This document shows positions 7,001 to 48,825 of a stretch of DNA of 60,876 bases, in pieces. Made by a program: the position numbers and the translations under genes. The notes under the pieces are model-generated. The model was not told the DNA's origin and searched no databases. It saw only the letters and a list, made by a program, of their open reading frames with translations. Within the stretch, counting starts at the first letter, position 1. Each line of letters starts with the position of its first letter. The stretch lies in assembly GCF_006345805.1 (NCBI RefSeq), contig NW_021832136.1:1-60876 (forward strand), given 5' to 3'. Origin of the DNA: Octopus sinensis (taxonomy: Eukaryota).

Positions 7001-10000
7001 GATGCCAATAATATCGCTACAAGTTTTTCCCCACCCCCCCTCCTTCGTTCCTTTTTCTCTCTTTCCCTTTCTTTCGTTCCCCCTCCTTGCTCAGTATATG
7101 AGAATTGCTACATAGATGAATTTTAGCTTGCGTGCGAGACGGTTTGCGTGAATATATGTACACATGCTTTTATGTGTATAATTTAGATTCATATTCATAC
7201 GTCTGTATATGTATGTATGGCGTTTACGCGCATCCTTTTGTGTATGTTGATATATATATGTGGATTTTAATATAAATATGTATTGCAGTATTTATAACAG
7301 GTTTAATTTCTATGCATTAATTTGTACTGTCTTCATTAACGGCAATAGGTTTTTTCCTCGGTTTTTTTCCTCGGATTTTATAATTTTTATAAGTTTTTTT
7401 ATATATATATACATATATTTTTGACCTTTTTGTTTATCGCTCGAAGATTGACCGTTTTTTCTAAAGGGCCAATCAAACAAGTCCATTTCTTTTTAAAGGT
7501 GTAGCGTTTGTAAGAGTATAGATTGAATTATATATATGTTCCATTCTAGCAAAAACTGTCTGATGAACGGCAACGAGAAACTCAGAGTAACAGATTTTGT
7601 TGAATTTTCTGCTGCTTAAAATAAAGTATATATATATATATTATATTATATATATATATATATATATATATATATGAGCATTCTAGGTCCGTGTATTTGT
7701 GTGCAACATGCATAATAGTGGAAAATTCTGGAAAATAGTTTGTGGCACTAAAGAAATCATCCTTCCAGCATGACCGCAGCCAGTGAAAGAACAAAAAAAT
7801 AATAAGTGTATGTGTTTGTGCGCGTGAATGGGTGGTGTTCGTGTATGCGTATATATATATATGTGTATGTGTGTGGTTTCTGATTACAAATATGGTTTCT
7901 GATTACAAATCTAGAAAATTTCATACATATCATCATCTGGAAAAGATTTTCTAACTAGAAAGGGTATGGCCCGGTCAGCCTGTAATGACATGCATAAGAT
8001 CTGGTCATCAAATCTAAGTAGAAACTTCAATCTTGAAATCTTCAAAGCCACAGTCGAACCAATTCTACTATATGGCTCAGAAACATGGACATCATCAAAG
8101 AAGCTCGAGAGGCAGTTGGATGGAACTTACACTCGCCTCCTTATGAGAGCTCAAAATCTCTCGTGGAAGCGTCATCCAACCAAAATGCAAAGTTATGGGA
8201 AACTACCACCTGTGTCATCTCTTGTGAAAGGTAGGAGAGTCCAGTTTGTGGGACATTGTTGTAGAGCTGAAAAAGAGGTAATTTCTACTCTTCTCTGGAA
8301 GCCATCTACTCGCAATACCAGAGGGCGCACACTCTCCTACCCTGATGTAATCTCCAGGGATACAGGCATCCAGCAACAGGACCTCCATAATGATATGATG
8401 GACCGTGAAGTCTGGCGTAGCATGGTAAATTCCATTGTCTCGACCACGGTCGAACAATGATGATGATGATGATGTGTGTGTGTGTGTTGTGTGTGTGTGT
8501 TGTGTGTGTGTGTGTGTGTGTGTGTGTGTGTGTGTGTGTGTGTGTCTATTTGTTTGAATACAAATTTGCATTCGTAAAAAGAAAGCTATTTTCTCACCTT
8601 TTGGCATAATGCTGACCGAAAAGGAAGGATTGTCGCAAGCTTTGGAGTTGAGTTTATGTTGTTTCTTGGCGAAAATTACCAGAGTTAGATGATCATTTTT
8701 GGGTTTTTCCATAACAAATACAGTTCCAGGATATTCATCTTTTGCAGTCGTCTTATAGTCTTTCTCGTCTTCATGGTGGTGTTTTTTGTGAAAGGTAACG
8801 TGCATGGTAACCTCGGCACAATGGGCCTTCACCTGATCAGAACAGTAAAGATGTAAAATTAAGGGTCACCTCGATCATTTGATAGCGATATCATCCCATC
8901 AACATACTGTTTAGCCCTGACAATATCCCTTCTATTACCTGCAAATTTTATACCCCGATGCTACCCACTGACCTTACTGAATTTATCCAACTTTTCTATC
9001 TCAGTAGAAATCCTTCCTGATTTCTGGGAATACTATTTCATTAATCCTCTGCAATTACAGATTTATTTCCAACAGTCCCGAAAATTCAGACGGGATGTGA
9101 AGACGATCATCAACGATTCTTCTTCACCAATATCTTAAATCCTTCTCCCTGTTCAAGTATTATCAATATGGCTTCCATAAAAAAAGTTTATCCGTATCTC
9201 GTCTCTACCCAAGTTTACAGATCCGTCTATCTCTCTTCTCCTTATCGCCCATTCTGGATCTCACCCTCACAGTTCACCTATCAACTGCATGGTAACCTCG
9301 GCACAATGGGCCTTCACCTGATAAGAACAGTAAAGATGTAAAATTAAGGGTCACCTCGATCATTTGATAGCGATATCATCCCATCAACATACTGTCTGGC
9401 CCTGACAATATCCCTTCTATTACCTTCAAATTTGATAGCCCGACGCTACCCACTGACTTTAGTGAATTTTCCAACTTTTCGATCTCAATAAAAATCCTTC
9501 CTGATTTCTGGGAATACAATTTCTTTAATTCCCCGAAATTATAGATTTATTTCCCACAGTCCCGAAAATTCCGACAGGTTGTGGAGGCAATCATCAACGA
9601 TTCTTCACCAATACCTTAAATCCTTCTCCCTATTCAAGCATAGATTGGCATATTTCGGTCATATTATGCGGAGAGAATCCCTGGAGAAGGACATCATGCT
9701 CGGAATGGTCAGTGGCAAGAGAGGAAGAGGCCGACCAAGAACCCGCTGGCTTGACAACATCAAGAGTGATACCAGAATGGACATAGCCAATCTGAAGGAA
9801 GCGGCCCAGGATAGAACTGACTGGAGGACACTGATCCAACGAGTGACCGAGAGGCGACTTCGACTGAGCGGATATATATATATATATATTATGCGGTGAA
9901 AATCCCTGGAGAAGGACATCATGCTCGGAATGGTCAGTGGCAAGAGAGGAAGAGGCCGACCAAGAACCCACTGGCTTGAAACCATCAAGAGTGATACCGG

Positions 10001-48825: not shown

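Follow-up and report, generated by a model that had tools for sequence, protein, structure and literature searches.

Central part of an octopod-family gene for a VWA-domain protein with five tandem beta-sandwich modules on an Octopus sinensis contig

The window analysed here, a stretch of 60,876 nucleotides, is the whole of Octopus sinensis contig VCDQ01005603.1 in assembly GCA_006345805.1. Its minus strand contains the central part of a real multi-exon gene for a protein with a VWA domain and five copies of a module of ~119 residues. Within a family of extracellular glycoproteins that has expanded in octopods, it is a paralogue that branches deeply. We put at about 0.6 the probability that it encodes an adhesion or matrix glycoprotein, with a VWA head that bears a metal ion-dependent adhesion site (MIDAS) on a glycosylated stalk, and that the window holds the central part of one such octopod-family gene. 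As it stands in the assembly, this copy cannot make the full protein, having a frameshift in the VWA domain and neither a signal-peptide exon nor a tail exon.

An earlier reading of the sequence alone, here called the original prediction, had proposed a hidden minus-strand gene of 19 exons running from E1 to B5, in the order E1-VWA-A-B-C-A-B-C'-C-A-B-C'-C-A-B-C'-C-A-B. All 19 exons were recovered between 8598 and 48825, and their coordinates, lengths, phases and AG/GT sites were verified throughout. The features of the locus, in the direction of transcription, are as follows.

48537..48825, minus strand: E1, 289 nt, phase 0>1; second half of the N-terminal alpha-helical domain of the family, exon 2 of the family
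45767..46323, minus strand: VWA exon, 557 nt, phase 1 in and out; complete VWA domain save for a 1-nt frameshift
45929..45937, minus strand: frameshift site, a run of five A at 45937-45933 followed by a premature TGA at 45931-45929
42475..42596, minus strand: A1, 122 nt, phase 1>0; opens the type-1 module
40826..41060, minus strand: B1, 235 nt, phase 0>1; completes the type-1 module, its identity to P0011 reaching 70% (E 5e-30)
39137..39220, minus strand: C1, 84 nt, phase 1>1; three-Cys linker
36648..36769, minus strand: A2, 122 nt; the ATG inside it is the start of NCBI model P0001
32972..33209, minus strand: B2, 238 nt; type-2 module, 9% His
31470..31553, minus strand: C'2, 84 nt; ancestral-type linker with three Cys
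29008..29091, minus strand: C2, 84 nt
28055..28176, minus strand: A3, 122 nt
26052..26286, minus strand: B3, 235 nt; A3+B3 is the sequence modelled with AlphaFold (predicted local distance difference test, pLDDT, 81.9)
24483..24566, minus strand: C'3, 84 nt; 95.7% identical to the C'4 region, flanking intron included
23336..23419, minus strand: C3, 84 nt
18804..18925, minus strand: A4, 122 nt
16068..16308, minus strand: B4, 241 nt; the whole module AB4 is 15% His
14700..14783, minus strand: C'4, 84 nt
12571..12654, minus strand: C4, 84 nt; the most diverged of the C copies
10638..10759, minus strand: A5, 122 nt
9286..9474, minus strand: B5 decoy, a 190-bp local duplication in the A5-B5 intron, 95% identical
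8598..8832, minus strand: B5, 235 nt; last recognisable exon, ending in phase 1 at a gtgaga donor with no stop, so that the frame is open-ended

The exon map, the exon order, the canonical splice sites and the phase code that had been proposed were all confirmed. Acceptors are pyrimidine-rich, ending in (c/t)ag, and donors read gtaag or gtgag in 19 of 19 exons, which makes 38 of 38 splice sites canonical. The A exons are 122 nt long in all five cases, pass from phase 1 to phase 0, and have the acceptor ...tgcag and the donor gtaaga or gtaagg. The five B exons (235, 238, 235, 241 and 235 nt) lead from phase 0 back to phase 1. All seven C and C' exons are 84 nt, are entered and left in phase 1, and have near-identical boundaries (cag/.../gtaagtac). 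The twelve exons of the A and C/C' classes (5 and 7) each code for fewer than 60 residues, as had been noticed. Splicing of the exons, which had been suggested as a check, gives 793 codons from A1 to B5 with zero stops. This product holds NCBI model P0001 of LOC115228461 (630 residues) exactly, from the ATG within A2 to the end of B5, and the exon boundaries therefore agree with the choice of the NCBI pipeline. In addition, octopus paralogues match every exon (tblastn, E down to 1e-74), and chance is therefore excluded. Across the 19 exons there are ~1,070 codons, and the sole stop among them is the one that comes from a homopolymer indel in the VWA exon.

The gene is not hidden, as had been claimed, since two partial RefSeq models are already present at the locus. 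NCBI calls two partial genes on this contig, one for a 191-residue VWA fragment and the other, LOC115228461, for an 'uncharacterized protein, partial'. These are one gene, split by the homopolymer frameshift; it is divided and truncated in the annotation, and recognition of this corrects the public record.

E1 begins at an acceptor (ttttctag/GTAAAC) and ends at a gtaagt donor. In tblastn it matches residues 77-172 of the paralogues P0011, P0002 and P0003 with 56-59% identity (E 1e-26 to 1e-32), and it has the length (289 nt) and the phase (0>1) of exon 2 at a paralogue locus, L001. The exon map of that locus is exon 1 (the signal peptide and 56 residues), E1, VWA, A, B and a tail exon. E1 is therefore exon 2 of the family and not the first exon. 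The proposed E1-to-B5 gene is real, but in this window it is neither complete nor intact, having one frameshift and lacking its first and last exons. The domain of ~150 residues to which E1 contributes the second half is modelled by AlphaFold as a bundle of seven helices (pLDDT 79.5). It has no match in Pfam, no PDB sequence match below E = 0.5 by profile, and nothing below E = 1.7 in Foldseek. A lysozyme or lytic-transglycosylase fold had been suspected from the ES...GGIWQV motif in the bivalve members, and was rejected: MltE and goose lysozyme reached a template modelling (TM) score of only ≤0.37, with E >5.

A MIDAS is defined by the motif DxSxS ... T ... D. The VWA/MIDAS domain of the original prediction is present: the VWA exon matches Pfam PF00092 with 144.3 bits (cut-off 23.8) and E = 5.7e-42 over profile positions 1-169 of 174, covering both halves, and the translation, read directly, has the complete set of MIDAS residues (D-S-S-G-S, GGGTQT(D) and the D in LVLVTDGKS). 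The domain is 72-78% identical to the VWA domains of the octopod paralogues and has a short terminal branch in the tree. The exon had been placed correctly and in the right phase, 1>1, but it contains the frameshift and the stop. The N-terminal three quarters of the domain lie in one frame, which runs to ...TVAAAKN and the stop, and the remainder, ending ...GSCK, is one frame over. All paralogues read through this point in a single frame, with a motif starting AA[QE], and the NCBI model of 191 residues stops here.

The five tandem copies that had been proposed are indeed five A+B modules, but they are one type-1 module (module 1) and four type-2 modules (modules 2-5), separated by three-Cys linkers. 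In the tree, modules 2-5 form a long-branched clade of their own inside type 2. Each module of ~119 residues has two invariant Cys and 2-5 N-x-S/T sequons, in agreement with the original prediction. The disulfide predicted for the module joins Cys46 and Cys107. The family modules are matched by hidden Markov model at 1e-42 to 1e-65, the window contributing five modules and seven linkers, and the type-1 module of the window gene has up to 66% identity to those of the paralogues. The two Cys are invariant in 23 octopus modules and in an 18-sequence alignment that includes cuttlefish and bivalve modules. Along with V49 and A71, they are kept from octopus to oyster. The linkers C and C' are 28 residues long and contain three Cys with the common spacing E-[AV]-V-C-x8-C-x8-C. 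In distant relatives the module is followed by a segment whose Cys align with these three. The shared spacing and this alignment show C and C' to be homologous, with C' as the module's ancestral partner.

The module had been described as unrecognised, and it remains so in sequence searches: none of the modules has a Pfam match at E up to 1, and the module profile finds nothing among PDB sequences below E = 0.5. Pfam scans of E1, of each module, of the C'+C pair and of the whole repeat region gave VWA alone, the rest being sub-threshold noise (DUF3081, OSTMP1 and similar). AlphaFold and Foldseek on one module had been suggested as a further check. The AlphaFold2 model of A3+B3, built from a 22-sequence alignment, is a confident beta-sandwich of 8-9 strands (pLDDT 81.9; predicted TM score 0.76), and the Foldseek neighbours name no family. 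They include viral jelly-roll capsids, a porphyran-binding carbohydrate-binding module (CBM), the GOLD domain of SPF and the beta-sandwich insert of DesR, a GH3 glucosidase. A compact beta-sandwich of 8-9 strands is what the predicted module has in common with jelly-roll, CBM, PA14 and GOLD-type domains. By this model the fold class is an ordinary one, with resemblance to jelly rolls at the level of fold class only and no family assignable. The guess of a PPC-type jelly roll was right as to the beta-sandwich class, but PPC itself has no Pfam match at E up to 1 for any module and does not appear in the top 50 Foldseek matches in PDB. The PPC-related Kex2 P-domain ranks 46th in that list, with a TM score of 0.38.

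The modules also differ in composition. His makes up 9% of AB2 (36769-32972), 15% of AB4 (18925-16068) and 8% of AB5 (10759-8598), as against 0-5% in other modules of the family. The His residues of modules 2, 4 and 5 cluster in two places, around the second Cys (CDHHHPS) and in the loop from strand 4 to strand 5, which is modelled with low confidence. This loop could be a metal or cross-linking site, or could simply have drifted.

With the repeat region as query, eleven proteins were found, every one of them from O. sinensis, O. vulgaris or O. bimaculoides. Their common plan is a signal peptide, the domain of ~150 residues, a VWA domain, modules with linkers, and a hydrophobic tail (...INAWIYAGLLLVWQMA) with nothing after it. 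The tail looks like a signal for glycosylphosphatidylinositol (GPI) attachment. Such a signal combines small residues at the omega site, a short polar spacer and a C-terminal stretch of 15-20 hydrophobic residues, and this pattern is visible by eye in the paralogues, for instance in ...SDAAVTKQ-LFINAWIYAGLLLLWQMA. The octopod paralogues (LOC115230178 and LOC115230439 of O. sinensis, LOC106868389 and 'collagen alpha-1(XII) chain isoform X1' of O. bimaculoides, and the CAI97-series VWFA proteins of O. vulgaris) have the same domains, linkers, exon boundaries and phases as the window gene. Their modules alternate as type 1, C, type 2, C', whereas the window gene has one type-1 module and then four of type 2, with C' and C between. 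The window gene also differs from them in its His-rich modules 2, 4 and 5, in its lack of exon 1 and the tail exon, and in its frameshift. The number of modules in the family ranges from 1 to 6. In LOC115230178 the modules appear to be alternatively spliced, as the predicted isoforms X1, X2 and X3 (P0004, P0007 and P0008) differ by exactly one A+B cassette: of two neighbouring type-1 cassettes, each 120 residues long, an isoform includes either one or the pair. Several family members lie on one 22.5-Mb contig of O. bimaculoides and one 40.2-Mb contig of O. vulgaris.

The module is not confined to Octopus. A search of 1.84 billion representative proteins with the module profile found only 22 relatives. 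Those outside Octopus belong to Argonauta hians, Sepia (Acanthosepion) pharaonis, Pinctada imbricata and Tegillarca granosa, with whole-library E-values of 1e-4 to 4e-6. The distant relatives have a signal peptide, the same alpha-helical N-terminal domain (by alignment), a VWA domain, the module with its Cys motif, and then 1-4 chitin-binding CBM_14 domains. Those with CBM_14 come from Sepia, Pinctada, Tegillarca and Octopus. A broad module alignment against an index of 5.8 billion proteins returned a single protein, which looks like a limit of the word index and not like biology. A bacterial match of 2,109 residues (P0031, E = 9e-4) was treated as chance. Likewise set aside was a Mytilus 'collagen alpha-1(XII)-like' match, a plain double-VWA protein without module or alpha domain. 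No papers on the family were found under LOC numbers or UniProt or RefSeq accessions; an octopus skin-mucus proteome paper names VWA domains only as an InterPro category. The alpha domain of ~150 residues and the beta-sandwich of ~119 residues with its three-Cys tail are two domain-sized regions, common to cephalopods and bivalves, that have no Pfam family.

Two known groups of proteins invite comparison. Shell-matrix proteins of the Pif/BMSP/LamG3 family, which also have laminin-G, are marked by the combination of VWA and CBM_14 (PMC11291548, PMC9635652). Like them the window gene has an extracellular VWA domain, and its distant relatives have VWA followed by CBM_14. The window gene and its close octopod paralogues, in contrast, lack CBM_14 and laminin-G: Pfam finds no CBM_14 in the window translation or in the close paralogues and no LamG in the paralogues, the C-terminus of the window gene being absent from the window. 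The module profile retrieved no canonical Pif or BMSP from the 1.84e9 representatives, and in the published classification ObiBMSP is the sole O. bimaculoides member of the clade. Because of these three points, membership of Pif/BMSP is not established. The same classification leaves unexplained the long inserts before VWA in PifS1 and between VWA and the chitin-binding domain in PifN. By position these may correspond to the alpha domain and the module of the present family, which is offered as a lead. The second group is collagen XII/XIV, of the fibril-associated collagens with interrupted triple helices (FACIT), after which NCBI names some of the paralogues. The VWA domain alone is the same. 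The paralogues lack FN3 repeats, a TSPN domain and a Gly-X-Y triple helix, and Pfam gives VWA only. The 'collagen XII/XIV' names are annotation carry-over from the best VWA match.

What might such a protein do? The alpha domain and the VWA domain would form a cation-dependent binding head, the MIDAS of which would use a divalent cation to bind its ligand, a protein or a component of the matrix. The beta-sandwich modules would be a glycosylated stalk setting the distance between head and membrane, and the paralogues would be GPI-anchored by way of their hydrophobic tail. The secreted adhesion, matrix or recognition role of the original prediction fits the signal peptide, the sequons and the GPI-like tail of the paralogues, and is itself a function that we infer. 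The family would descend from an older mollusc protein, with the core of alpha domain, VWA and module followed by CBM_14, which may have been a chitin-associated matrix protein. A wider account, which we hold only tentatively, is that alpha domain, VWA and beta-sandwich with its trailing three-Cys motif form a conserved but uncatalogued extracellular core, older than the split between cephalopods and bivalves and once joined to CBM_14 in a matrix protein. On this account the shell-less octopods lost CBM_14, gained the GPI-type tail and multiplied the module by way of phase-1 exon blocks, turning a matrix protein into surface proteins of variable length for adhesion or recognition; the window gene would be a live, His-rich member with a four-fold amplification, and its frameshift an assembly error.

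Might the protein instead be a secreted matrix component of a chitinous or hardened structure such as beak, radula, stylet or sucker lining, similar to Pif/BMSP, with His loops for metal coordination or cross-linking and no membrane anchor? The 1-4 CBM_14 directly after the module in Sepia, Pinctada, Tegillarca and Octopus relatives speak for this, as do the established place of VWA plus chitin-binding proteins in shell matrix (PMC11291548, PMC9635652), the 8-15% His of modules 2, 4 and 5 with its concentration in the strand 4-5 loop, and the lack of a tail exon in this copy. However, no CBM_14 is encoded in the window, the close octopod paralogues without exception have the hydrophobic tail, not CBM_14, at their C-terminus, the published Pif/BMSP clade contains one O. 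bimaculoides protein only, and relaxed constraint could equally explain the enrichment in His. We consider this proposal unlikely. Still more improbable in our judgement is a diversified recognition molecule, immune or of self/non-self type, with surface diversity from duplication, cassette splicing and fast evolution. A multi-copy clustered family, the 1-6 modules per protein, the cassette isoforms and the high ratio of nonsynonymous to synonymous substitution rates (dN/dS) would all suit it, but this evidence is purely circumstantial, and relaxed constraint also fits the high dN/dS.

Several observations weigh against a functional adhesion or matrix glycoprotein at this locus. The VWA exon has 557 nt, which is not a multiple of 3 as phase 1>1 demands, and the reading frame through the domain is broken by a 1-nt shift at the A5 run 45937-45933, giving the TGA at 45931-45929. 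The whole window was searched for the signal-peptide exon 1 and for the tail exon (INAW[IV][YS]AGLL...), with relaxed tblastn (word size 2, E ≤50) as well as with blastn queries made of the exons of the paralogue and their flanks. Neither exon was found, the only matches being to transposons and microsatellites. There is no exon 1 within 12 kb upstream, though intron 1 of the paralogue is only 3.7 kb. At the other end, similarity to the B4 unit stops ~20 nt beyond B5, at 8577, and the remaining 8.5 kb downstream of B5 has no C'5 or tail exon, and contains retroelement fragments. dN/dS is 0.65-0.83 among modules 2-5 and ~0.7 in E1, VWA and AB1 against the paralogue P0011. O. vulgaris, a close relative, yielded no protein with an identity above 80%. 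Additionally, the Foldseek matches of the module in PDB are weak only (best E = 1.9e-3, TM ≤0.56, 6-14% identity).

Is the copy broken because of an assembly error and the ends of the contig? Or, is it a decaying duplicate? We judge the two roughly even, with the frameshift leaning slightly to assembly error. The second answer can be put in its strong form, as an unprocessed pseudogene: a truncated tandem duplicate in decay that has lost both end exons, carries a real frameshift in VWA and yields no working protein. This form we find possible and somewhat doubtful. It would account for the premature stop, for the missing exon 1 and tail exon, for similarity that gives way to retroelement ORFs (open reading frames) just past B5, and for the dN/dS values. 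It is likewise favoured by substitution at normally conserved positions in modules 2-5 (VTVYGAFNNSYP altered), by the lack of an annotated orthologue above 80% identity in O. vulgaris or O. bimaculoides, and by the two partial models into which NCBI had to split the locus. Yet every splice site is canonical, the ~1,070 codons are stop-free apart from the single homopolymer indel, the VWA domain keeps its whole MIDAS and its terminal branch is short, and every module keeps its core residues (two Cys, V49, A71). The frameshift sits in a homopolymer, and the error most frequent in long-read assemblies is the loss of 1 nt from a run of A. P0045 in the same assembly shows a similar frame problem. 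It is an O. sinensis 'collagen alpha-1(XIV) chain-like, partial' protein from a contig of 62,305 bp, and its N-terminus (NNVRPRKTLIFWIGNELVYLKPK) resembles E1 translated out of frame; a second family member therefore seems to be affected. The missing ends, finally, may lie outside this 61-kb unplaced contig. Many family members are on small unplaced contigs, so the gene cluster is poorly assembled.

Every unit (VWA, A+B, C and C') is entered and left in phase 1, so that adding or leaving out such a block keeps the frame intact. This would account both for amplification of the block C / A+B(type 2) / C' within the gene and for the cassette isoforms of the paralogue. That the window gene amplified this block follows from the tree, in which module 1 lies in the type-1 clade and modules 2-5 form their own type-2 clade. 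The duplications differ in age, judging by sequence identity: the C'3 and C'4 regions are 95.7% identical with their flanking intron, and the B exons are 73-79% identical between repeat units whose introns are unalignable apart from shared transposons. The persistence of the B exons beside such introns also points to constraint. Such symmetric phase-1 blocks are a clear example of how the number of repeats in a surface protein changes through duplication and cassette splicing. If the link to VWA plus chitin-binding matrix proteins is true, the family would also show the fate of part of the shell-matrix toolkit after octopods lost their shell. The work is a useful annotation and a modest domain discovery. 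Specialists will not be surprised by it. The VWA logic and the fold class are ordinary.

Downstream of the gene, in the place expected for its 3' exons, lie pieces of retroelements. Two near-identical reverse-transcriptase fragments, with a weak match to Pfam RVT_1, are inverted relative to each other at 598-921 (minus strand) and 1511-1807 (plus strand), and an ORF of 599 residues at 4496-6295 (plus strand), with no Pfam match, is probably another retroelement.

The introns contain further repeats. The B5 decoy at 9286-9474 is a copy of the end of the A5-B5 intron, its acceptor and the first 33 nt of B5, ~490 bp upstream of the real B5; its intact acceptor could be a decoy splice site. In the A4-B4 intron, 18400-18696 (plus strand) is a fragment of a mariner/Mos1-type transposase with its helix-turn-helix domain (Pfam HTH_48, E = 8.6e-20). 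A 395-bp tandem repeat of three copies with 94% matches occupies 21673-22837 in the C3-A4 intron, with related copies at ~20000-23300, and generates a series of similar 'MKI[PS]...' entries in the ORF list. An element of ~410 bp, probably a SINE-like (short interspersed nuclear element) repeat, is dispersed on both strands at 13301-13736, 15571-15993, 17031-17445, 34154-34555, 40129-40529, 42954-43368 and other places. Its copies are 88-94% identical, occur in most introns and in the paralogue locus L001, and are the source of a recurring pseudo-ORF. Microsatellite and low-complexity tracts of trinucleotide, TA/TATG and CA/TG types, at 12529-13298, 23407-23883, 25310-25806, 29725-30302 and 34819-36365, account for most of the long spurious ORFs in the introns.

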